Shown here one piece after another: positions 14,117 through 53,397 of a stretch of 64,000 bases of DNA. The translations under genes were made by a program, and so were the position numbers. The notes below the pieces were generated by a model that saw only the letters and a list, made by a program, of their open reading frames with translations, was not told where the DNA came from and made no database searches. How positions within the stretch are numbered: the first letter of the stretch is position 1; every line of letters starts with the position of its first letter. This DNA is from Pristiophorus japonicus (Eukaryota), in NCBI RefSeq assembly GCF_044704955.1, contig NW_027251257.1, positions 992,001 to 1,056,000 of the forward strand, given 5' to 3'.

Positions 14117-17100
14117 AGATTTGTGTACAACTCTTTTAATAGGAGACAAAATTAACCAATTAAGTCAAATGCCCCCCAATCTGGGGGACACTCCAAACAT
14201 TTTTCAACTGCCCTTTTTATTTTGACTTTTTTTGGGGGTTTTTTTTGTGATTTTTTTGGGGCAATAAAATCATAAATCTTTACTAGTGCCCCCTATAAAA
14301 GGGGAGGAGGACACTAAAAACCCGGCAATTAAAACAAATTAAACTTTAAAACATATAAAATCCAATTAAAATTCGGTTGCCGGGGATAACAATGCACTCC
14401 AGTCCCTCCGCCGCCCACCTCTCGCGGAAGGCCGCAAGCATACCGGTGGACACCGCGTGCTCCATCTCTAAGGACACCCTGGACCGGATGGAGGCGTGGA
14501 AGAGAGGCAGGTAGTCAGGCTGAACGATCACCTCGACCGGCTGATGGCACCCTTGGCCGTGACCTGGAGCAGTCCGATGAGAAGGCCCTCGGACCTACCC
14601 GCTCCCCTCCGCACAGGGTGTCCAAAGATCAGGAGTGTGGGACTGAAGTGCAGTCAGAATTTCAGGAGCAGCCCCTTTAAATATTGGAACAGGGGCTGCA
14701 ACCTCGTACATTCAATAAAAACATGGAACACGGACTCTTCCAGACCGCAGAAATTGCAGATGGCCTGGGAGCCCGTGAACCGGCTTAAAAATTTGTTGCA
14801 CAGGACTGCTCCATGCACCACCCTCCAGGCCCAGTCCCCGATAAATAATGGGAGGAGATTTGTGTACAACTCTTTTTTAGGGGGAGACAAAATAAACATT
14901 AAATCAACTGCCCCCCGATCTGGGGGACACTCCAGACACTTATACCTGACCTCTTTTTTTTGTGTATTTTTTTCCTGTTGTGATTTTTTTGGGTGGCATT
15001 AAAATCATATAATTTACAAGTGCCCCCTATAAAAGGGGAGGGGGACATTAAAACCGGCAATTAAAACAAATTAAACTGTAAAATAAATAAAATCAAATTA
15101 AAATTTGGTTGCCGGGGGTTAGAATGCACTCCAGTCCCTCCGGCGCCCACCTCTTGCGGAAGGCTGCGAGCGTACTGGTGGACACCGCGTGCTCCATCTC
15201 TAAGGAAACCCTGGCCCGGATGTAGGCGCGGAAAAGAGGCAGGTAGTCAGGCTGAACGACCCCCTCGACTGCCCGCTGCCTGGACCGGCTGATGGCACCC
15301 TTGGCCATGCCCAGGAGCAGTCCTACGAGGAGGCTCTCGGACCTATCCGCTCACCTCCGCCCAGGGTGCCCAAAGATCAGAAGTGTGGGACTGAAATGCA
15401 TCCAGAATTTCAGGAGCAGCCCCCTTAAATAATAAAACAGGGGCTGCAACCTCGTGCATTCAATAAAAACATGGAACACGGACTCTTCCAGACTGCAGAA
15501 ATTACAGGTTGCCTGGGAGCCCGTGAACCGGCTTAAAAATTTGTTGCATAGGACTGCTCCATGCACCACCCTCCAGGCCAAGTCCCCAATAAATAATGGG
15601 AGGAGATTTGTGTACAACTCTTTCTGGGGGGTGACAAATTAACATTAGATCGAGTGCCCCCCGATCTGGGGGACACTCCAGACACTTATAAATGCCCTTT
15701 TATTTTGTGTTTTTTTTTCCTGTTGTGATTTTTTGGGGGGCATTAAAATCATATAATTTACAAGTGCCCCCTATAAAAGGGGAGCGGGACATTAAAACCG
15801 GCAATTAAAACAAATTAAACTGTAAAATAAATAAAATCAAATTAAAATTTGGTTGCCAGGGGTTATAATGCACTCCAGTCCCTCCGGTGCCCACCTCTCG
15901 CGGAAGGCCGTAAGCGTACCGGTGGACACCGCGTGCTCCATCTCTAAGGAAACCCTGGCCCGGATGTAGGCGAGGAAAAGAGGCAGGCAGTCAGGCTGAA
16001 CAACCCCCTCGACCGCCCGCTGCCTGGACCAGCTGATGGCACCCTTGGCCATGCCCAGGAGCAGTCCTACGAGGAGGCCCTCGGACCTACCCGCTCCCCT
16101 CCGCACAGGGTGGCCAAAGATCAGGAGTGTGGGACTGAAGTGCAGCCAGAATTTCAGGAGCAGCCCCTTTAAATAATAAAACAGGGGCTGCAACCTCGTG
16201 CATTCAATAAAAACATGGAACACGGACTCTTCCAGACCGCAGAAATTACAGGTTGCCTGGGAGCCCGTGAACCGGCTTAAAAATTTGTTGCATAGGACTG
16301 TTCCGTGCACCACCCTCCAGGCCAAGTCCCCGATAAATAATGGGAGGAGATTTGTGTACAACTCTTTTTGCGGGGAGACAAATTTACATTAGATCGAGTG
16401 CCCCCCGATCTGGGGGACACTCCAGACACTTATAACTGCCATTTTTTTTTGGTTGTTTTTTTAAAAACTTTTTTTTGTTTTTTTTTGTGATTTTTTTTTG
16501 GCATTAAAATTATAAATTTTACAAGTGCCCACTATAAAAGGGGAGGGGGACACTAAAAACCCGGCAATTAAAACAAATTAACCCTTAAAACATATAAAGT
16601 CAAATTAAAATTTGGTTGCCAGGGGTAACAATGCACCCCAGTCCCTCCGGTGCCCAGCTCTCGTGGAAGGTCGTGAGCGTACCAGTAGACACCTCATGCT
16701 CCATCTCTAAGGACACCCTGGACCGGATGTAGGCGCTGAAGAGAGGCAGGCAGTCAGGCTGAACGACCCCCTCGACCGCCCGCTGCCTGGACCGGCTGAT
16801 GGCACCCTTGGCCGTGCTCAGGAGCAGTCCTACGTGGAGGCCCTCGGACCTACCCGCTCCCCTCCGCACAGGGTGCCCAAAGATCAGGAGTGTGGGACTG
16901 AAGTGCAGCCAGAATTTCAGGAGCAGCCCCTTCAAATAATGGAACAGGGGCTGCAACCTTGTGCATTCAATAAAAACATGGAACACGGACTCTTCCAGAC
17001 CGCAGAAATTGCAGGCGGCCTGGGAGCCCGTGAACCAGCTTAAAAATTTGTTGCACGGGACTGCTCCGTGCACCACCCTCCAGGCCAAGTCCCCGATAAA

Positions 17101-17838
17101 TAGTGGGAGGAGATTTGTGTACAACTCTTTTTGAGTAAACAAATCATTATTTCAAGTGCTCCCCGATCTGGGGCACAGTACAAACATTTCACAAGGCCCC
17201 TTTTTTTTTTGTGCACTAAAGTCATAGTTTCTTTTTTCCAAGTGCCCCCTTTAAAAGGGGAGGGTGACACTAAAAACACCGGCAATTAAAACAAATAAAC
17301 TTTAAAACATAAAATCAAATTAAAATTTGGTTGCCGGGCGTGATGATGCACTCCAGTCCCTCCGGTGCCCACCTCTCGCGGAAGGCCGCGAGCGTACCGG
17401 TGGACACCGCGTGCTCCATCTCCAAGGACACCCTGGACCGGATGTAAGAGCGGAAGAGAGGCAGGCAGTCAGGCTGAACGACCCCCTCGACCGCCCGCTG
17501 CCTGGACCGGCTGATGGCACCCTTGGCCGTGCCCAGGAGCAGTCCTACAAGGATGCCCTCGGATCTACCCGCTCCCCTCCGCACAGGGTGCCCGAAGATC
17601 AGGAGTGCGGGACTGAAGTGCAGCCAGAAATTGAGGAGCAGCCCCTTTAAATAATAAAAGAGGGGCTGCAACCTCGTGCATTCAATAAAAACATGGAACA
17701 CGGACTCTTCCAGACCGCAGAAATTGCAGGCGGCCTGGGAGCCCGTGAACCGGCTTAAAAAGTTGTTGCACGGGACTGCTCCGTGCACCACCCTCCAGGC
17801 CAAGTCCCCGATAAATAATGGGAGGAGATTTGTGTACA
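14117..17838 (-). mobile_element. Five tandem 5'-truncated Tx1/L1-group non-LTR retrotransposon 3' ends (about 715-765 bp each)
   Basis: Each unit encodes GDLAWRVVHGAV...CNFCGLEESVFHVFIEC (RT-associated CCHC finger) plus a 3' UTR; units are separated by the identical 13-mer AGATTTGTGTACA at 14117, 14856, 15604, 16348, 17111, 17826. Confidence 0.85.
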
Positions 17839-19114
17839 GACAGGTTCCATTCACAATAGGTGGTTGTAATTAGCTTTCTGTCTCTGCTCAGCGGGCAGGA
17901 AACAGCTGGTTGTTTTTCTGCACCGAAGCAGCAGATGTTTCCTGCAAGTTACATTGTGAGTTCTCGCCCCTCCCTGATGGTGATATTGTGGATTTCTGTG
18001 ACAAAATGTGTGGGAGAGATATGGACTGTGTGTGGGTGGGATCAACGTGGAAGTTAACTCTTCGACTATTGAATCAGTAAACAACATCCATCTGAAATAT
18101 ATTTCTGCTGTCATGACTTTAAAAACATTATGTTTCGTGTATGACATGCGCAGTACTGAATAAAATATAATTGGAGCAATGCAAAGCTTTTGATGTATCG
18201 ATTAATGAAGGACAATTCTCCTCTGGTTTCATGCCATCTTCTATTACAATCCAGCAGACGGCAATGGAAGCTGTGCTGGTATCACATACACATAGAGAAC
18301 TACAGTTACAAAGAACGTAATAACCCATATAACAGTTCTTGGTCCCTTTGATAATTTATATTTGACTGCATGAGCTGCAGTCTGCCGAGTTACAGTCCCA
18401 GTGATGGAGCCTCTGACCGGGAATTCCAGTTACTGAGGTTTTGGTCAAATGCCATTGACAGCCTTTATATTTAAAAGTAAAACACCCTCTGGTACAACTG
18501 TGAGAGATGTGCACTTGGCATCAGAACATCTGGCCACAAGTGGATTAAGTTCAGCACCAAACCAACCTGCACGATGGCAACACTCAATTAAAGCATTTAT
18601 TATAATGTTTTCCCTTTCTGGTGCAAATTAAAAATGTTACCTCAAACCAATAATATCCCAAAGCTACGAATGTAATTTCTCCTTTAATCGGTTCACACTG
18701 ATCGACACTGTTTAATCTGCAGTGTTGAGGAAATTTCCATGGTCGGTGGGACAGTAATGTAATTGCGATTAGAAAGCGAGGCAGCGTGATTGAATCCTCA
18801 CCCAGATAACTTCGGGCGGACTGTGCGGTCTCCTCACAATTATACAGATCGATGTAGATCTTCACTTTTAACATTTAGAATTGCTCAGCGTGAAATAAAG
18901 TAACAATCTCCACACGGGTGAACTGAGATCCAGTGCCCGATTTGGGCCAGGGACGATTGTATTAAGTGTGGAGCTGCACAGACGCGATGGACGCTATCTG
19001 ATAAAATATAATGTTGTTCCCAAACTTAGCTTTCCCTGCTGTATAACCGGCAAGAATATCATCAACTCGTGTGTCCTTTTCTCTTCCATCCCACAAGCAG
19101 TTGCCGATCAGAAA

Positions 19115-19460
19115 AATAAAGACTTGCATTTATATAGCTCCTTTCTCGACATCAGGATGCCCCAAAGCTCTTTAGAGACAATTAAGTACTTTTTTGAGTG
19201 GTATCACTGTTGCAATGAAGGGAAACACGGCAGCCAATTTGTGCACAACAAGATCCAACTAACAGCATTGTGATACATGACTAAATGATCTGTTTTAGTG
19301 AAGTTGGTTGAGGGATAAATATTGGTCAAACACAGGGGAGAACTCTGTTCGAAATAATTCCATGTGATATTTTCCATCCACCTGAGGGGAATTGGACACG
19401 GAGTAAATGTGGGCTGTTTGTGGAGAATCCTCACACTGAATCAATTGTATACTGAATATG
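19115..19460 (-). mobile_element. SINE / L2-tail element (DeuSINE-like)
   Basis: Begins GACTTGCATTTATATAGCTCCTTT, the reverse complement of an L2-type 3' tail; a similar tail lies at about 27810. Confidence 0.5.
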
Positions 19461-19684
19461 TTTTGGATAGATGGTGTATAATCCCCAGCAGTATATCGGC
19501 AATCAAAGTCAAAATAAGTTGGGGGAATGGACACAAAAGACGGATTATTAATGGTTAATTATATTTTACACAGCTGGACTCAGACAGGAAAACAGGGGAG
19601 GAGTCAGTCTGCTGCTGGGGGAGGCGTGTGACTCCCAGTCCCCATCCCTCTCTCTCTCTCACACACACACAGGGCTCCGGACAG

Positions 19685-19692
19685 TTTAAATA
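19685..19692 (+). promoter_or_regulatory. Putative TATA box of the VH promoter
   Basis: TTTAAATA about 90 bp upstream of the leader ATG; no ATGCAAAT octamer seen in the proximal 300 bp, consistent with shark VH promoters. Confidence 0.5.
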
Positions 19693-19780
19693 GCGGGACC
19701 CAGCTCCAGGTTCACAATCAGGAGGCGGTGTTGCGGCACCAAGACACGCTCCCGAGTCAGTTACACCGAGAGACCCGACG

Positions 19781-19826
19781 ATGGGACTTGCCCCGTGCCT
19801 CTGTTTGTTTCTGGCTTGCTTCACCT
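19781..19826 (+). CDS. IGHV: Ig heavy-chain leader exon (MGLAPCLCLFLACFT)
   Basis: ATG at 19781, hydrophobic peptide, phase-1 donor GTGAGT at 19827 in frame with the V exon. Confidence 0.92.
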
Positions 19827-19948
19827 GTGAGTATTCCTCGCTGCTTCCGTGACACAATAGAAGGCAGCTTCAGATATTGTGTTTTTATTTCTATTCATTG
19901 ATGTGAATGTTCTCCAATGTAATTACAATTTATTTCATTCACTGACAG

Positions 19949-20251
19949 ATGTCCGGTCCGATATTGTGCTGACCCAGTCGGCTTCTGTGTCGAGGAAGCT
20001 CGGAGAATCTCACAAACTGTCCTGTTCAGTGAACGGGTTCAATCTGGACAGCCACCACGTGCACTGGTTTAAACAAGTTCCCGGGAAGGGGCTGGAGTGG
20101 CTGCTTGCTTACAGAAATCCGTCGGATACCAAACTTTACGCGCCTGGAGTCGAAGGTCGGATCATCCCTTCAAGAACATCTTCCACAACCTACATCGAGA
20201 TCAAGAACCTGAGAACCGAAGACTCCGCCATGTATTACTGTGCAAGACGGG
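19949..20251 (+). CDS. IGHV: Ig heavy-chain V exon, open reading frame
   Basis: Acceptor CAG 19946-48; (Y)VRS-DIVLTQ...LSC...HWFKQVPGKGLEWL...EDSAMYYCARR with both conserved Cys and Trp. Confidence 0.95.
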
Positions 20252-20290
20252 CACAGCGACCTGAACACGTCCTGGGCTCGTACAGAAACT
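20252..20290 (+). promoter_or_regulatory. 23-RSS of VH
   Basis: CACAGCG (20252-58) + 23 nt + ACAGAAACT (20282-90). Confidence 0.93.
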
Positions 20291-20649
20291 GAACGGAGAG
20301 CAATTGCAGCAACTTCCATCGAATTCTCGGTCAGTAACGGTGTAAAATATATCAAGAGATGTGTTTAACCTAGATTGGAAGAATGTATTTACTACAGCAA
20401 TAAATTGTCTAAGAATAAAATGCACATTAACTAGATTTGTATAGATGAAGATGGTTTATAGTTACTGTTTACAGTGTCCCGGATTAACAACGAGGATTCA
20501 ATGGAACCTTTAATATTGTATCTATGGGCATGATTTTGGTAGAATTCTGCCCTCTGCGAAAGAATCATCAATAGATAATCAATATCTGATAAAACCTTCT
20601 GTTGATTGAGCGATTTATTACCTGACAGCGTTAATCAGAGAGTGAGTGC

Positions 20650-20677
20650 AGTATTTGTGCGGGTCCCTGTCACTGTG
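20650..20677 (-). promoter_or_regulatory. 12-RSS 5' of the J segment
   Basis: AGTATTTGT (20650-58) + 12 nt GCGGGTCCCTGT + CACTGTG (20671-77). Confidence 0.88.
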
Positions 20678-20730
20678 GTACAGCTATCTCGACGACTGGG
20701 GACAAGGCACCATGGTGACAGTGACTACAG
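20678..20730 (+). CDS. IGHJ: JH segment, possibly germline-joined DJ (YSYLDDWGQGTMVTVTT)
   Basis: WGQG motif; phase-1 donor GTAAGA at 20731 in frame with Cmu1. Confidence 0.95.
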
Positions 20731-23700
20731 GTAAGAAACATCCACTCTTTCAGTAACTGTGGAATTTGTTTCTTTATTTTATATTTCTGTTTATTTCAAT
20801 AATTCACTGATTCGCTGGGTTCCGTGTTAAGTTTTTTTTTTAGCTATGTTTCATTTGATTCTGCTGCAATGCTTTTATGGAATGAAACTACTTCTCAACA
20901 CAAAATGTTCTTTCGGGATTGATCCCCAGATTGATGTGATTTGGTGTTTATCTGCTGATGGGACTGTGCGCCTGGGTTACTTTAAACACCCAATGGTTAT
21001 TAAACTCTTTGGCGTTTCTACAATGCTTAATCTCGGTAACATCTAATTGCTGCATGTTTTCTGATCAAACGCAAATATTATATTTAAATGTGTTTGAAAG
21101 ATGATTGTAGGCAGAAACAGAACGCTTTAGAGGTTATAAATAAATGTAAGATATTTTATTATGTTTTATTAATGATAATTGCATTGTCATTTATTGATCA
21201 AAAATTGACGAATGCTCATATACGTGAAATGTTACTGTAATGAAGAACTATATAATTAATATATTTGTGGCATGAATCAGATTTAACTTAATACAAATTA
21301 CATTATTATAATGTAGTAATAGCAGGCAAGAGCACAACAATATCCTGTATCAATATTAATTGATTAACATGATCCGTCTAATCACAATTCTGCTGTCATT
21401 ATTTTATATTTCTATTTATTTCAATAATTAATTCGTTCAGTGATAAACGAGTTCGCTGGATTCTGTAGTGACATTTTTTGGCAATGTTACATTTGATTCT
21501 TCTGAAAGGGTTTATAGAATTAAGTTGCTTCTCCACAAACCATTGTGTTGTGGGATCCAGCCCCTCAGTGCTGTTGTTTGCTGTTTATCTGCTGAGCAGA
21601 GTGTGTGTCTGGGTTACTCTGAATAACGAAACTTTGTGAAACTGTTTGGTTTTTGTGCAATGTTTATCTCAATGACATCGAACTGCTGCAGGTTTTTATG
21701 ATCCGTTTAAAACTGTTTCAAAGATAATTGTCGGCAGACAATAAGTAGGTTTTATAAATTATAAATCGTTTATAAATAATTTTCTTCATCTTATTATTTA
21801 AGTGAGACTTACAGGTTCAACTATTAACCTATGGTTTCCGGTGCACACATTTAATACATGGAATGTTACTATTATATGATTACAAATTTGCAGGTTGAAG
21901 GGGAGTTAAATACATATAATTCAAACAATTATAATGAGGTAATGTTGCCCAATATCACTAAATATGAGATGGAATTAATATTCATGTATTAAACATTATT
22001 CGCCTCCCACAATTCTGCTGTGCACTGGTCACAATTAACGTGAGCGGAAAATTTTAGAGGCTGGAAGCAATTTCTGATTATATCTGAAATTATTTTAATA
22101 ACAGCATACTGATTCCACCGCAGTTCAATGAGGGTCTGAAATTAATTGTTATCTCCCTGTTTTACACAGATGCATGACAGATTGTATTCAATTATCAATA
22201 AAATGCGAGTTGTAAATTGCAGTTTGTAAATGTCATAAATCTGACTGGTTATTAAATTCTTAAATCATGCAATTTCTTCATTTTTATTTGTTGTTTCATA
22301 GCGAGACAATTATCACTAAGCTAATCTGAAACCGTTTGTAAGATGATAGGCTGAGCGGTAGACGTCGCTGGCAGTCAAAGCATTGTTCATATGATTCTAT
22401 TTAAATTCAAGAAAAGTGCAGACTGACAGACACACAACCCATTGAAATGCAAGCGGATTAATTTAATTTCAAAAGGTCAATATTAGTTTTGAATTGAGTA
22501 ACAACATCCAGTCTCCCATTGCTGTGCTGTATATGGGATAGAATTATAGACAGTGAACAGGTTACATTTAAGAGTTATGTTTAACTATCATTCATGTTAA
22601 ATTGATCAACAAAATCTCTCCTCCATTTGCTCATTAAATGTCAGTGTCGCAGATGGTCTGAATGATTTGTTCCCCGCCAATATTATGTTGATCATTCTGG
22701 AACTTAGTTGAAGTAAATAGCCGAATATATTTAATAATTAATTTACGGGCATTGTGTGAATTACGGGAGTAAAATATAAAAAGATTGTCTGTGTTATTAA
22801 ATAGCGGAGACTCTGTTACTGACTGCACATTGGAATCTTGCCTTTTACTTCACAAAATATATTTTATAGTTAAGATTGAGGATAATGTTTAAACTGGAGG
22901 GCCCTGATTTAGAAAACATACGATGTTACAGCCCTCCCATAGTTAGTGAGATGTAACCAGGGCCAGACTTTGAACTATTTAAAATTGTCCACTCCTAAAT
23001 CCATCATGTGAAATCCACTCTGAGAAAAGATGGAGTGTATGTTGTATTAGAGAGTTCAGAAATATACAGAGTTTATAAGTGTGCAGATAGAAAGCGGGAA
23101 TGTAATGGAAACTCGTCACCATTTTAACAATCAAATGTGATTTGATTCAAGTAAGCATAATATATTAGTCTGAATGTCTTTATATATTAATTTGATTCTT
23201 AATATTTTAAAATTGATAATTGCCATGTTAATTTAAATGAAACGCTAATATTTCACACGTTACCAAGCAGAAACAGGATTAAAATGAATATTAACTAATG
23301 TTATTATAATGCAGTATTACATCAGCTAACATCAATAATATCAGTGTGAACTCATTAACCATTAATGACCTCCCACAATTGCGTTGTATACTGGACAGTA
23401 TTACAGTTACTGCAAAATCTTTGGGTTGGAGAAAATTTTAAATTATGTCTAACATTAATTTAGTAAACAATACATGTCTTACTCAGCTGTGTTTAGATGG
23501 ATAAGGTGTCGCCGCAGATTTTAATGAATTAACTTCGTGTTTTGCCTCGATGATTTTACAGATTATATTTAATTATGAAATTGTATTGAACCAGTGGGTA
23601 ATGGGTTTTCAATGTAACTGTTTCCTGGTTTGTTAAATTCCTAATCTGACAGGAAGTCCCGATTAAATACAGCAAATTACCCAGAAATGTGAATTATTTC

Positions 23701-24139: not shown

Positions 24140-25030
24140 TGTTAGACTGTAGAAGGAGCTTTAATTAGTTTCTAACCCGTGTTATACCTGCCCCGGGACT
24201 GCCTGATGGGACAGTGTAGAGGGAGCTTTACTCTGTATCTAACCCGTGCTATACCTGCCCCGGGAGTGCCTGATGGGACAGTGTAGAGGCAACTTTACTC
24301 TGTATTTAACCCGTGCTGTACCTGCATTTGGTCAGTTTGATGGGACTATTTAGAGGGAGGTTTACCCTGTATCTAATCCGTGCTGTACCTGCTCTGGGTC
24401 AGTTTGATGAGACAGTGTAGAGGGAGCTTTACTCTGTATTTTACCAGTGCTGCAAGTGCCCTGGGTCAGTGTGTTGGGACAGTGTAGAGCGAGCTTTACT
24501 CTGTATCTAACCGGAGTAACCTGCCCTCGGAGTGTTTGAAGGGGCAGAGTAGAGGGAGATTTACTTTGTATTTAACCCATGCTGTACCTACCCTCGAAGT
24601 GTTTGATGAGACAGTGTAGAGGGAGCTTTACACTGTATTTAACCCTGGGACTCTGGGAGTGTTTGATGGGATAGTGAAAAGGGAGAATTTATTTTGTATC
24701 TAACCCGTGTTGTACCTGCCCTGGGTCAGTCTGATTATGCAATGTATAAGGAGCTTAACTCTGTATTGAACTCGTGCTGGAACTGTCCCGTGACTCTTTG
24801 ATACGACAGTGTAGAGGGAAAATGTACTCTATATCTAACTCGTGTTCTATCTGCCCTGGTAGGACAGGGTACATGGAGCTCTGCTCTGTATTTATCTAGT
24901 ACGGTACATTATCTGGACTGTTTGACACTGTAGTATTGACATGGCTTTTCTCGGAATCAATTCCTTGATACACCTGACCATACAGTGCAGAGGGAACTTT
25001 ACTCTATATTATTTGTAATATAACAGACCT
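24140..25030 (+). repeat. 67-bp minisatellite in the J-C intron
   Basis: Unit GGGACAGTGTAGAGGGAGCTTTACTCTGTATCTAACCCGTGCTGTACCTGCCCTGGGAGTGTTTGAT; period 24208 to 24275. Confidence 0.92.
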
Positions 25031-28434: not shown

Positions 28435-28734
28435 CGACACCATCTCCTCCCAAACTCTACGCCCTGCTCTCCTCCTGTGAACAACCCAACACTGGCGGCC
28501 CCGTCACCTACGGCTGCTTGGCGATGGACTACTCCCCGGAAATCACCAGCTTTTCCTGGAGGAAAGAAAAAGAGCCGATCAGCATTGGATTGAAGACCTA
28601 TCTGTCAGTGCTCAACAAGAAGGGAGCCTACACATGGAGCAGCCAGTTAACCATCAACGAGTCAGAGGTGGGGAGCAGCGCAATCTACTGCGAGGTTCGA
28701 CGAGGTGGGGCGGTCTGGGATGTAAAAATGTTAG
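28435..28734 (+). CDS. IGHM: IgM Cmu1 exon
   Basis: Acceptor CAG 28432-34; [17 protein letters not shown]...[16 protein letters not shown]...[22 protein letters not shown]; donor GTGAGT 28735; matches shark Cmu1. Confidence 0.95.
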
Positions 28735-28769: not shown

Positions 28770-29735
28770 AAAGCAGAGAAGTTATGTTCAACTTCTATAC
28801 AACCTTGGTTAGACCAGACTTAGAGTAATGTGCATTTTTACTCTCTATCTGACACTGAGAGTCATGTGCACAGTTCTGGTCTGCATATTACACTTAGAGT
28901 CATGTGCACAGTTCTGGTCTCCATATTACACTTAGACTGCTGTGCACAGCTCTGGTCTTTATATCACACTAAGAGTGCTGTGTACAGCTCTGGTTTCCAC
29001 ATCATATTTAGAGTACTGTACACAGTTAAAGTCTCCATAAGATATTAAGAGTGCTGCGTACAGGTCTGGTCTCTATAACACACCTTACTGTGCGCAGTTC
29101 CGGTCTACAAATCACAATTCGAGCACTGTGCATAGTGCTGGTTTCCATATCACACTTAAAGTACTATGCACAGTTCTGATCTCCATATCACATATGGAGT
29201 ACTGTATACTGCTCCAAGCTCCAGATCATATCAACTGTAATGTGCATTGTGCTGGTTTCCATATTATAAGAATGATACAGAGGAACAAGGGCGACACCAG
29301 AACTGAAAGATTGTAACTGTCAATAATTGTTGAACCGGGTGGGACTATTTTCTCTAGAAAAGGGAAGGCTTGGTGATGATCAAATAGTGGTCTTTAAAAT
29401 TATGAAGGGATTTGAAAGGTTAGTCGTGGATAAAATATTTCTGCATGAGCAGGAGCCCGATATTGGGGCCATAAATATAAGATATGCACTAATAAATCCA
29501 ATAGGGAGTTCAGGAAAAAGTTCTGCACCAAGGGAATTGGTAAAATATGGAACTCCCTACCGCATGGAATACGAGGTGAATAGCATATATGCGTTTCAGG
29601 GGAATCTAGATAAGTACACGAGGGAGAAAGGGATATAAGGTTATGTTAATAGCGGGTAGGCAGTAGGGAGAGAAGGTATATGTGGAATATAAACATAGGT
29701 CTGTTGGGCCGAATGGCCTGTTTCGGTGATGTAGA
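28770..29735 (+). mobile_element. CR1 3' fragment containing an internal 38-bp tandem expansion (about 28820-29270)
   Basis: Repeat unit cttagagtcatgtgcacagttctggtctccatattaca derives from the LEYCVQFWSP codons; CR1 resumes as GLFSLEKGRL (ORF 29327). Confidence 0.75.
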
Positions 29736-29815: not shown

Positions 29816-30127
29816 ATCGTGTGGTACATCATCCAACTGTTATCCTTACCCTGAGTTCCAGGGAAGAAATCACCAGCAGCAGATCTGCAACCGCCGTGTG
29901 TTCAATCATCGATTTCTGGCCAAAGTCACTGACCATGAATTGGCTGAAGAATGCACATCTTGTGCATTCGGGAATCGTCACTTCTCCCGTCTATGAGGTG
30001 AACGGGAACTTCTCGGCGACCAGTCGGCTGACATTCCCCGCCGGGGAATGGTTCGCCCGCTCGGTCTATACCTGCCAGGTCTCTCATCAAGGATTCATCC
30101 AAAGCCGAAACATCACCAGACCTCCGG
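29816..30127 (+). CDS. IGHM: IgM Cmu2 exon
   Basis: Acceptor CAG 29813-15; [28 protein letters not shown]...W...YTCQVSHQ; donor GTAAG 30128. Confidence 0.95.
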
Positions 30128-32381: not shown

Positions 32382-32690
32382 ATGATTCCTCCTGCAACGA
32401 ACCAAAAATCACTCTTCCGCAGCCGTCTCTAGAACAGGTCTTACTGGAGGCGACAGTGACCTTAACCTGCATCGTGTCTAATGCTCCTTATGGAGTCACC
32501 ATGACCTGGATGCACGAAAAGAAGAATTTGCAATCAGGGATTGCCGGCCAACCGGGAGAGGCTCCCGACAGCGTGATCAGCAAATTAGACATCTCGACAC
32601 AAGACTGGCTGAGTGGGAATGTGTTTGACTGCGTGGTGAGCCATCGGGATATGCCGACTCCTATCAGAGGTTCCATCCGCAAGGAAACGG
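32382..32690 (+). CDS. IGHM: IgM Cmu3 exon
   Basis: Acceptor CAG 32379-81; [25 protein letters not shown]...[13 protein letters not shown]; donor GTGAG 32691. Confidence 0.95.
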
Positions 32691-33205: not shown

Positions 33206-33597
33206 GTAAAGATCCGCGGGAACCAGCCGTGTCTGTCCTCCTGCCCTCGGCAGAAGAAGTCTCCGCTCAGAGGTTGGTCACCCTCACCTGCTTAGTGAGA
33301 GCTTTCTCTCCCCGAGAGATCTTCGTCAAGTGGACCGTCAATGGCAAGCCAGTGGATACCGGCAACTACACGAACACCGAGGTAATGGCGGAGAACGGCA
33401 GCAGCTATTTCTTCACGTACAGCCTGTTATCCATTGCAGCCGAGGAGTGGGCCAGCGGTGCTTCTTACTCCTGTGTGGTGGGACATGAAGCCATCCCCTT
33501 GAAGATCACGAACAGAACGGTCAATAAATCCAGCGGTAAACCCAGTTTTGTGAACATTTCTCTTGTTCTGATGGACACCGTCAATTCTTGTCAATGA
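33206..33597 (+). CDS. IGHM: IgM Cmu4 exon with secretory tailpiece
   Basis: Acceptor CAG 33203-05; [18 protein letters not shown]...YSCVVGHEA; internal donor G|GTAAA at 33536; tailpiece [20 protein letters not shown] with N-glycan site and penultimate Cys. Confidence 0.96.
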
Positions 33598-34004: not shown

Positions 34005-34550
34005 TACCCCACCAGAGAGAGGGGAAAGGTCAATTGTTAACCCACGGTACTCCCCACTGCCCCACCAGAGAGAGTGGAAAGGGCAATTGTTAACCCCCTG
34101 TACCCCCCACTGTCCTACCAAAGAGAGGGGAAAGGGCAATTGTTCACCCCCTGTACCCCCCACTGCCCCACCAGAGAGAGGGGAAAGATCCATTGTTAAC
34201 CCCCTGTACTCCCCACTGCCCCACCAGAGAGAGGGGAAAGGTCCATTGGTAACCCCCTGTACCCCCCACTGGCCCACCAGAGACAGGGGAAAGGTCAATT
34301 GTTAACCCCCTGTACCCCCTACTGCCCCACCAGAGAGAGGGGATAGAGCAATTGTTAACCCACTGTACTTCCACTGCCCCAACAGAGAGAGTGGAACGGT
34401 CAATTGTTGACTTACTGTCCCGACCACTGCCCCAGCACAGTGAGGGGAAAGGTCAATTGTTAATCCACTATACCCGACTTCCACACAAGCGAGAGGGCAA
34501 AGGCTAATTGTTAACCCACTGTACCTCTCAATTCCCACCAGGGAGAGAGA
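34005..34550. repeat. 53-bp minisatellite between the secretory poly(A) site and TM1
   Basis: caattgttaacccc...ccccactgccccaccagagagagggg recurs at 34031, 34084, 34137 and onward. Confidence 0.9.
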
Positions 34551-35890: not shown

Positions 35891-36018
35891 ATTCCTCAGA
35901 TCACAGCTGGAATGAAGAGTATGAGGACCAGAGCGGCAACATCTGGACAACCGCTTCCACATTCACCATCCTGTTTTTCCTGAGCATGTTCTAAAGCGCT
36001 GGAGTCACTCTGGTGAAG
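35891..36018 (+). CDS. IGHM: IgM TM1 exon with premature stop TAA at 35992-35994
   Basis: Acceptor CAG 35888-90; DSSDHSWNEEYEDQSGNIWTTASTFTILFFLSMF*SAGVTLVK; donor GT 36019. Confidence 0.92.
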
Positions 36019-44040: not shown

Positions 44041-44741
44041 TGCGTGAAGTGGGGGGCGGGGCGGGGGTGGTGGTGCTGCACCTTCTGGAAATATCAGGGA
44101 TTGAATCCCGAGGGGTTATAAAGAAAATGAATGAGAAAATACAGCCTAGCCCGATCGGGTTCCTCCAGGTAAAGTTATTGTTGTCAGTGTTGGGATAAGT
44201 GAAATTCAACAATCATTTTAACCCAGGGTCAAATTCAGATATTTCCACCCCTCGTGTTAGCACAGACCTTCAGATCTCTGAGATGAATAACAGGATCAAT
44301 CTCTACAAATAAAATGCTGGATATGATGCAGATCCTTCAGGTCACATTTTGAAAGCTATCTCGGCGGGGCAGAGGGATGTCCACTTATCACGTCCCTCGT
44401 AGTCTTGAGGCTATGACTAGCAATGGAGCTCATTAGCTGTGGTGGGAAATCAGTGATAGCGGGCATAGAAACTGGTTCAAATTATATTTCGCTTTTGCAC
44501 CTTTCTGAGAGGTGGAGGGGGGTGGGGTGGAGGTGGATGGAATAAATGACAAGATTGGTCCACAGCTGGTGTCAGTTCTGAGAGACCAGCCAATCCTGTC
44601 CCTCGCAAATGCGACTCATTCTCCCGAGAAGAGAAGTCTGCCCCTGATCTCAGTTTATTATTTCATATCAGACTATAAACGTCAACATATTTAAAACATT
44701 TCTGCTTAAAATATTTTCCTTCGAACTCTAAACCAGGCACC

Positions 44742-45174
44742 ATGTTCTCATTATGTTCCTTTCTGATAATAATGTTCATGCTGTCTGGTGAGTACATGTT
44801 TAAATGGTCAGTTTGTGTTTCATGGGTTATGTTTACACCCAGACTTATCACATATTCTGTATTTTGTTACAGGAATGAGTGGCAAAGAATCAGTGTCCCA
44901 GGATCCATCTGAATTATTGGTTACAGAAGGAAAGACATTAATACTGAGTTGCAATTACTCGGAAGCTGGTTCAACTCTGTTCTTGGAACATCCAGTATTC
45001 CGGGGAAACTCCGAGATATTTACTGAAGATATATAGTGTGGGGACAGTACAGCAGTCTCCAGATTTCCCAGACAGGTTCTCTGCTGTATTGCACAGGGAC
45101 AACAAAACGGTTCATATAACTATCACCGGAGCTCTTGTCTCCGACACTGCTGTGTATTTCTGTGCTATGAACCC
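44742..45174 (+). pseudogene. TCR alpha/delta-type V pseudogene A (leader 44742-44787, V exon 44873-45174)
   Basis: Leader MFSLCSFLIIMFMLS|GT; SVSQDPSELLVTEGKTLILSCNYS...+1 frameshift at about 44983...WNIQYSGETPRYLL...DTAVYFCAMNP. Confidence 0.88.
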
Positions 45175-45214
45175 CACACTGCTGCAGAGATATAGTGGAT
45201 CCCGTCCAAAATCC
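45175..45214 (+). promoter_or_regulatory. Degenerate 23(+1)-RSS of V-A
   Basis: CACACTG + 24 nt + CCAAAATCC. Confidence 0.7.
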
Positions 45215-50400: not shown

Positions 50401-52557
50401 CTCTGTCTGAGCATAAATACAGATCCCCGACGCACTGCAATGCCAAACAGGAAACAGCGGCAGCAATCTCTGCAATAACACAGGGCAGGCAAGGCGGGTG
50501 AGAGTGAGAGCAGCAAACGGAAGCTGTGGGCGGGGTTGCCACGGGCAGTGTTATCCCACATAGGATCCATCTGTGAGGACAGAATTCAATAATAATGTCC
50601 CTTCTGAAATGATATAATTCTGCCTCTCTGTAAGGGTTGTGCTATTTTCATATACGTTAAAAATTCTGGGCAAGCAGTCGAGCGATAGGAATTTCAGCAT
50701 TATATTCTTCAACAGTTAATGAAATCGTCAGCAGTGAAGTGGTTTATAACCAAGTGCTGACACGGGTGGTTGGAAACAACAAAACTGCAATTGATCCCGA
50801 ACTTCTAAAATTATTAAACTGTAATGGATTGCAAAACATTACTGAGCATAAATATAATCTAAAAAGTAATTTCACCTCAATTTATATTGAGAAAGCGTCA
50901 GTCAGCATTGGTTGATGTAAAGTGACTGGCGGTTGGAATCCGTGCTCTGTCAGCGCCACTTGGCCGGGAATAAAGCATCTCCTTTGAGCTGATGTCACAG
51001 AACACGGTTACTGTACGAGGTGTCCTTGGGTTTTCTCACTGTTGGCCTCAGTGCACAGTAGTACATGGCGCTGTCTGCGAGCTGCAGCTCAGTCAGGGTG
51101 ACAACAGCTAGAGTTTTTGACTTTTCAGAATGACAGAGAAACGGCTGTTAACTTCGTTCTTTCCAAAATAATGTATTCAAATTACGAGAGTGGGAGCCTT
51201 CTACTGGCTCTGACGGTAAAGCTCCAGGTAGTAGGTCGCTTGGGGGGTGGAATAGTTACAAATAATGCTCATTGAGGTACCTTCCAGATATTGGGCTTAT
51301 TTTGGCCATTGATCCACGGAGTCTCCAGAATTTAATTCTGCAGAAAACAATCGTGGTTACCCATGGAAACAGCGTAAAGCACAGACCACACGTTTCTCTT
51401 TATTTGAGAAAAATCTGTATCTCTTTGAGTATATACAGGGAGACAAAGATATACAAGCATCAGATTAATGGCTAGATATTGGATATTGATAGTTAGGCAG
51501 GTTAATAAACAGAGACATAGAGACAGACAGTCAGACAGATAGAGTGAGTGACACAGAGTGGCGGGCAGACAAGTTGATAGATTGTTGAGAGGTAATAAGA
51601 TGGATGGAGGGATAGACCTAGAGATCGATGAAAAGAAGACAGTTGTGTCAATAGTGGAATGGATAGACAGATACATGTGTAAATAAATAAACCTATCAAA
51701 TAACAAAGATGCCAGGCCCGAAATAACAAAAAGCCCAAACTCCATAATGGCCGCAGTCTCCCCACAATGGGACACCGCACTTCGCCCGCTGCCTCCTCTC
51801 AGTTGCAGATTTCGGAATGAAGGAAAGAATGTGAAGTGTTTCCGTCAGCAAACGGACTCCCCGTCATTTCCGGAATCAAACCCAGAGCCGGGTCTCAATG
51901 AGCTTGCCGGTGATTATTGTCGCTGTCTGTGTTCACCATCATTGCCCGCGGCACCGGCACACAGACTTCGTGTGCTGCTCTGCCTTGTCCCGGACATCTA
52001 AACATCCGATCCCGGGAATGGGTGAGGATTCTGTCTCTCCATTACGGGCCTCACCCACAATGGCACCAACACATCCCAGAAATGGTTGAAAGGGCAAAAA
52101 AGCTTCGATTGAAATGTATTCTTCAAAAGGATTCTCATTTAAGGGAGGTCAGAACGGGGAATACTCTGCCAGACACTGTTAGTGACGTAGACTCCATCAA
52201 TTATTATTTTATAAAGGAAGCATATTGAGGAATTATTTAATTATTACAGGGTGTAGGGAGCCTTTGTTGTGTTTTAAGATACTAACATTGATTGAGAATG
52301 AATTCTTGAAGCGTGCCTCCATTCTGTATTGTACAAGGCACGAAAAAATGGTTCAAACTATCTCGCGGTGTCCTGACAAACAAATCCACATTATTGCACC
52401 GAAAGTTTAAATCACATTCAGACAATGCCCACAAGAGGGGGCTGTGAAGCGACACTGCTGGCGATCAATTTGGCAGAATGTGTATTAAAAAGTTAGAGAG
52501 TACGTCATAAAATAGGGCTCAAATCAAGGTAAGGAGGGACCGTCGAACTGCAGCCCA

Positions 52558-52852: not shown

Positions 52853-53020
52853 GGCCCGGGGTGGGTAAACCTGAGATCAGCTTCTTTCGTTAGTTCAACA
52901 GAAAGAAGCCTCTGAGTTGGAATCTGCCTCCTTGTTAATTCTCCCGTATATAATATCTCTACCCTAGGAGCAACCCGTCCTCCGTGTGCAATGCTTTCAG
53001 CCTCCTTTCCATCTGATCCG

Positions 53021-53358
53021 ATGGCACTCCGGATTTACAGAGTTTCCCTGCTGATTTGCACTCTGATCTGCACGGATGTGAGCGGTGAAGATGAGGTGAT
53101 GCAGATCCCTCCATCGGTGGTTGTTAATGAAGAGGGAATCGTATCTATAAACTGCACCACGACAGCTGCTTTTACTGTCTTGCGCTGGTACAGACAGCTC
53201 TCGAATCAGACCCTCCAGCACCTGGTGCTGGCCACAAGCAGGGCCGATCAACATGGGAGGATCACTGCTTCAATCGGGGGGAGGAAATAAACGCAGTGTC
53301 CTGACTGTGAGAGACGCGCAAGTGACAGACACCGCCACCTAACTCTGCGCCGTGAACC
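53021..53358 (+). pseudogene. TCR alpha/delta-type V pseudogene C with leader fused to V (no intron)
   Basis: MALRIYRVSLLICTLICTDVSG-EDEVMQIPPSVVVNEEGIVSINC...WYRQ...; frameshift in the G-run at about 53276-81; DTAT*LCAVNP with TAA at 53340. Confidence 0.88.
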
Positions 53359-53397
53359 CACAGTGTAACAAACAGGTGGAGAGTCCGCACAGAAACC
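53359..53397 (+). promoter_or_regulatory. Near-consensus 23-RSS of V-C
   Basis: CACAGTG + 23 nt + ACAGAAACC. Confidence 0.93.

Follow-up and report, generated by a model that had tools for sequence, protein, structure and literature searches.

The analysed DNA, hereafter the window, is a stretch of 64,000 nt on the forward strand of Pristiophorus japonicus (GCF_044704955.1, contig NW_027251257.1, positions 992,001-1,056,000), in which a sequence scan found no N stretches. The window contains one complete IgM minilocus of the cartilaginous-fish type on the + strand. Protein-level searches were run exon by exon, and the following features were recognized.

19781..19826, +, leader exon (MGLAPCLCLFLACFT), phase 1, with a GT donor
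19949..20251, +, VH exon, open, ending in ..DSAMYYCARR+G; V-set domain (PF07686, E 4e-13)
20252..20290, +, V 23-RSS: heptamer CACAGCG (20252-20258), 23-nt spacer, nonamer ACAGAAACT (20282-20290)
20291..20649, +, V-to-DJ intersegment, 359 bp, AT-rich, with neither an RSS nor a heptamer-like motif
20650..20677, +, 12-RSS: nonamer AGTATTTGT (20650-20658), 12-nt spacer, heptamer CACTGTG (20671-20677); read as the 5' RSS of a former D
20678..20683, +, GTACAG, putative D remnant of a germline D-J coding joint
20684..20730, +, J core, ending in ..LDDWGQGTMVTVTT, with a GT donor at 20731
28435..28734, +, Cmu1 exon, open, C1-set
29816..30127, +, Cmu2 exon, open, C1-set
32382..32690, +, Cmu3 exon, open, C1-set
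33206..33597, +, Cmu4 exon, open, C1-set, with the secretory tailpiece and a stop
35891..36018, +, TM1 exon, with an in-frame TAA (35992-35994) replacing the conserved Tyr of ..LFYS..

Structure of the IgM minilocus

The minilocus has a VH with a split leader (the leader-V intron is 122 bp) and a 3' 23-RSS, a single JH (WGxG..VTV) with a splice donor, and four Cmu exons of the C1-set type that include a mu tailpiece. A pair of free, RSS-flanked D segments was not found between V and J, nor were intact transmembrane exons. The best solved relatives of Cmu4 and its tail are IgM mu chains, which were matched through the tailpiece. The J exon (20678-20730) is 53 nt of ordinary length and reads G + YSYLDDWGQGTMVTVTT + G, followed by the GT donor. 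Its end is at 20730, as placed by the earlier note on this DNA, and not at 20729, the final G being exonic. The RNA contigs of related genes splice to Cmu1 just past the J core end at 20730. The J-Cmu1 intron is approximately 7.7 kb. The same note had regarded all exons on the secretory route as open and in correct splice phase, and this held: Cmu1-4 are bordered by AG/GT, and the phase from J to the Cmu4 stop sums to whole codons.

The search with the V exon protein yielded 9 matches only, and no rearranged cDNA of this V was among them. The nearest public relatives were a V of Scyliorhinus torazame (P0002; 80%), which continues into a closely similar 23-RSS, and an old entry in UniParc, UPI0000376B81 (P0001; 79%), which retains the same CDR1 (DSHHVHW) and CDR2 (YRNPSDT). 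Judged from these sequences, the V lineage looks old.

Recombination signals and the interval between V and J

The V exon runs into CACAGCG, a 23-nt spacer and a nonamer (20252-20290), and a 12-RSS stands before J after 359 bp (20650-20677), both as previously described (the distance having been put at about 360 bp). The heptamer of the latter, CACTGTG, is a perfect CACAGTG on the opposite strand. By chance, 0.045 occurrences of a 12-RSS with at most 2 mismatches would be expected in 64 kb with both strands counted, and the single one observed abuts J exactly.

The earlier statement that no RSS-flanked D lies between the two signals was confirmed: the RSS scan of 20291-20649 detected no RSS with at most 6 mismatches on either strand, and neither CACNNTG nor CANNGTG occurs in this interval. 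We also considered a hidden D in the interval, which was ruled out by the absence of heptamer-like motifs and by the richest 15-mer having only 9 G+C. The interval is colinear with related short-read contigs at approximately 90% identity (X1 record 3: 20297-20647) with small indels only, and thus no D-sized piece is missing inside it relative to the relatives. The spacing between V and D1 in shark clusters is roughly 400 bp (PMC2435157), which the 359-bp interval fits.

Evidence from short-read contigs

Seven read sets were considered. X1-X4 are DNA-like and derived from one sample of unspecified tissue, possibly that of the assembled individual, while X5-X7 belong to another study and X5 and X6 among them behave as RNA. 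The contigs of X1, X3, X5, and X6 were aligned to 19400-21200 at 80% likeness. One X1 contig (record 4; 376 nt) covers 20349-20724 with 0 differences, including the border between the RSS and the DJ segment, so that this border is present in short reads as well as in the assembly.

The nature of the 12-RSS is indicated by an X3 contig that matches the window across the 12-RSS and GTAC, as far as 20681, and from there reads TACAGCGGGGT, CACGGTG, and a spacer. Behind the same 12-RSS, this contig carries a 15-nt free D (GTACTACAGCGGGGT) that possesses a 3' heptamer of its own; the comparison is based on a 30-letter consensus from the end of that one contig, which is not the true parent cluster. 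As the same 12-RSS and GTAC front a free D in a related contig, the 12-RSS in the window is best regarded as the 5' signal of a D, and GTACAG as what is left of a D. An RNA contig with a related V (X5 record 17; 96%) carries the D core CTACAGCGGG in its junction, indicating that the free D is in use.

The other side of the junction can be compared with a germline J (X5 record 18), which aligns to the window only from 20684 and is preceded by A + CACTGTG. A nonamer-like block 12 nt upstream of this heptamer is absent. From this arrangement, the germline J (A-CTATCTC..) sits behind a different signal, probably of the 23-type.

Besides the exact contigs, there are higher-depth related contigs, 5-10% different, which span the promoter, V, the V RSS, and the whole interval. 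One higher-depth X1 contig joins 20681 to 20691; the related clusters, too, thus have the 12-RSS and GTAC close to a J core. Altogether, a more abundant set of related contigs with the same V-DJ layout appears to exist, and the uniqueness that the earlier note had given to this cluster was overstated. Contig depths, which are a rough guide rather than copy numbers, are 4.4 and 14.2 for the exact contigs, and 47-65 and 175-195 for the related ones, a contrast that suggests a multi-copy sister family, albeit only as a hint. Several contigs match the RSS and 14 nt upstream of it but diverge further upstream (loose ends at 20636), indicating that two kinds of 12-RSS flank exist.

Two additional observations on the contigs were made. 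X3 record 13 (20461-20684; 1 difference, depth 14.2) stops two letters past 20682, inside the putative D remnant, which hints at a near-identical copy or an allele diverging there. The summed contig depth rises 3-5 fold over 20681-20802, which takes in the J exon and reaches 70 bp into the J-C intron; far more IgM clusters share this part than share the V side.

A probable germline join of D and J

Based on the comparisons above, we propose that the locus is probably a germline V-DJ cluster, in which D is fused to J and V is free. In the germ line of an ancestor, RAG would have joined D to J, deleting the 3' RSS of D and the RSS belonging to J along with the intervening DNA, and the 5' 12-RSS of D would have stayed in front of the fused DJ. 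The fused segment would then comprise GTACAG, six letters that are D-derived or junctional, and J minus its first base. The term "D-less" that had been applied to this cluster is consequently inappropriate, since the RSS and GTAC are shared with a free D and the D appears to be joined to J instead.

The sequence itself is consistent with such a join. The heptamer is followed by GTACAG and CTATCTCGAC..., of which the first four letters, or seven with a 3-nt gap, are those of the free D, and the sequence from 20684 on is J without its first base. Relative to the 30-letter contig ends of the relatives, D is cut to GTAC(..AG) and J is one base short. The trimming of D at its 3' side and of J by one base, together with the retained 5' 12-RSS, resembles a D-J coding joint. 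Two segments are fused, the inner RSSs and the intersegment are lost, and the outer RSSs are kept. The putative D remnant is at most 6-7 nt. An origin of GTAC as P nucleotides from the J end was also considered and ruled out, as the J core should then follow directly, yet AG intervenes.

A germline D(D)-J join that left the 5' 12-RSS of D in place had been put forward in the earlier note, with GTACAG as a possible relic of D. The related contig with a free D supports the former, and the latter gains support from GTAC starting the free D and the germline J aligning only from 20684. As for the parts of this mechanism, we infer RAG as the agent and germ cells as the site, as well as the number of D segments consumed (one or two), which D was involved, and the timing. 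Germline joining by RAG is an established origin of joined Ig genes in sharks (PMC2193156), and V-DDJ is a normal product of RAG in the lymphocytes of the nurse shark (PMC2435157).

The 23-RSS of V and the 12-RSS of DJ are convergent and compatible under the 12/23 rule, and one deletional RAG step would complete the V region, excising 426 bp and leaving a single junction. The light-chain-like single step predicted previously stands in these two respects, namely the compatible signals and the deletional orientation, but not as a novelty in its own right, since the one-step heavy-chain clusters VD-J and VD-DJ are already known (PMC5192425). The untrimmed V-DJ join is out of frame. This is usual for untrimmed joins. 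In frame, the product would carry a CDR3 of about 9 residues (AR[R]..YSYLDD), short rather than "very short" as once supposed, and not extreme.

Alternative explanations

The best-surviving alternative is that D was lost without RAG. In a cluster with one D (V-23 / 12-D-22 / 12-J), the 12-RSS regions of D and J resemble each other, and unequal crossing-over or a simple deletion between them could have removed D and the D-J intersegment. Near-identical 12-RSS blocks occur in two contexts, as the loose ends at 20636 indicate, and would serve as a substrate for such an exchange. Nevertheless, the letters behind the heptamer match the start of D (GTAC..AG) and not that of the germline J (A-CTATCTC), and the first base, no more and no less, is missing from J, as is typical when a coding joint has been trimmed. 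We thus regard a loss of D without RAG as unlikely.

Much less probable is an artefact, in which the assembled sequence would not be inherited but would stem from a somatic V-DDJ allele of a lymphocyte or from a deletion made in assembly. B cells and thymocytes of the nurse shark frequently contain V-DDJ as a somatic intermediate (PMC2435157), the source tissue of the DNA runs is unspecified, and the end of X3 record 13 two letters past 20682 hints at a branch. On the other hand, the exact junction was assembled at depths of 4.4 and 14.2, like other low-depth contigs in both runs, a depth that a single lymphocyte clone would not attain, and there are higher-depth related contigs with the same layout. 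Bearing on inheritance are the exact contig in the runs of one sample and a related contig of like layout.

Finally, a primary V-J gene, D-less from the outset and with a J natively bearing a 12-RSS, would agree with an interval devoid of D or RSS relics and with the ordinary J exon length (53 nt), but we consider it highly improbable, because a related contig has the same RSS and GTAC ahead of a free D, this D occurs in the transcripts of related V genes, and the known IgM clusters all derive from V-D-D-J (PMC5192425, PMC2435157). A gene of that kind would lack D-derived letters and carry a J-native RSS, whereas the germline J begins at 20683/20684 behind another signal.

Comparison with known joined immunoglobulin genes

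The joined forms of IgM described in reviews are VD-J, VD-DJ, and VDJ (PMC5192425, PMC4279169); VD and VDD joins are given by Lee et al. (PMC2193156). The germline-joined IgM genes of horn shark and skate (VD-J, VD-DJ, VDD-J, and VDJ) share with the locus studied here the cluster-type IgM, the inherited fusion, the loss of the inner RSSs, and the retention of the outer ones (PMC5192425, PMC4279169, PMC2193156). VD-J and VD-DJ are alike in needing one further RAG step, and the latter already holds a germline D-J join. In contrast to the horn shark and skate forms, V is wholly free here and faces DJ directly, so that the remaining pair is V-23 / 12-D(5'). This pair of RSSs is absent from the forms listed in the reviews on shark Ig (PMC5192425, PMC4279169). 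The literature search turned up V-DDJ solely among somatic intermediates. Heavy-chain clusters that need a single step have precedents; an unjoined V opposite a germline DJ, as a variant of the known germline joining in sharks, is listed rarely or never.

The closest counterparts in layout are the somatic V-DDJ and V-D-DJ intermediates of the nurse shark (Malecek et al., 2008; PMC2435157), which likewise have a free V, a retained V-D intersegment, and DJ fused behind the 5' RSS of D. These occur in single B cells and thymocytes, whereas the layout presented here was found in a genome assembly, short-read contigs, and apparently a family of related clusters. In terms of origin, the NS4 light-chain genes of the nurse shark (Lee et al., 2000; PMC2193156) offer a parallel, as the RAG-like joining of split relatives in germ cells was recent and was recognized by comparing the joints with unjoined relatives. 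However, NS4 comprises light-chain VJ genes that are fully joined and non-rearranging, while the present gene is a heavy-chain one that is joined at D-J only and, as predicted from its signals, still rearranging. Nurse shark IgM1gj is also a germline-joined IgM with a predetermined contribution to CDR3, but it is fully VDJ-joined and has no Cmu2 (PMC4279169), in contrast to the free V and four Cmu exons found here. Outside sharks, the mammalian DJH intermediate and the light-chain V-J loci are similar in that a DJ (or J) with a 12-RSS is targeted by one V-to-(D)J step under the 12/23 rule; DJH is somatic only, and the light-chain J bears no D-derived letters.

A germline V-DJ would be the missing counterpart to VD-J, VD-DJ, and VDJ, as well as an inherited image of the somatic V-DDJ intermediate. 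To our knowledge, germline joining by RAG is peculiar to cartilaginous fish. It is relevant to the reshaping of antigen-receptor genes by RAG in the course of evolution. If the whole family of related clusters is V-DJ, it would document RAG acting several times in germ cells, or once with amplification afterwards, and provide heavy chains with diversity from a single junction. We tentatively raise the idea, doubtful as it is at present, that the V-DJ clusters form a family of one-step IgM genes, inherited and amplified on the basis of an old V lineage and giving semi-invariant, innate-like antibodies through a single junction, and are not one decayed accident. An X6 contig consists of a related V (91%), 12 letters, and the J core, spliced to Cmu1. 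If such a family is real, which we hold to be rather doubtful, an RNA contig of this type might be its product.

Condition and expression of this copy

The secretory route of this copy is open. Because of the TAA in TM1, a membrane receptor would end partway through its membrane span. Within 650 bp upstream of the V ATG (19130-19780), a search for the octamer (ATGCAAAT, allowing one mismatch) was negative. There is a TATA-like TTTAAATAG at approximately 19686, behind a CT/CA microsatellite (19645-19672). No RNA contig of the exact locus was seen in X5 or X6, although contigs drop rare variants and this does not prove silence. The stop in the TM1 exon leads us to regard this copy as probably decaying and no longer a working B-cell receptor gene. 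Function had therefore been rated too highly in view of the TAA, the missing octamer, and the lack of exact-locus RNA contigs; with its membrane exon broken, this copy adds little on function.

Other elements in the window

Three tandem arrays lie within the minilocus: a 67-bp array in the J-Cmu1 intron (24148-24859), a 38-bp array in the Cmu1-Cmu2 intron (28852-29205), and a 53-bp array of 10 copies with 82% matches between Cmu4 and TM1 (34007-34547). On the - strand, 2-5 kb upstream of V (15000-17900), the end of a retroelement-like ORF (..LYTNLLPLFIGDLAWRVVHGAV..ITPGNQILI) is repeated in tandem, in four to five copies.

IgM clusters mixed with TCR alpha/delta V segments are a linkage published in 2025 (PMC12227049). 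In the window, three TCR alpha/delta-like V segments occur 11-20 kb behind Cmu4, at 44700-45214 (+, ..YFCAM), 51000-51450 (-, ..YYCAL), and 52990-53397 (+, ..LCAV). All of them need frame changes or hold stops, and the third keeps a near-perfect 23-RSS (53359-53397).
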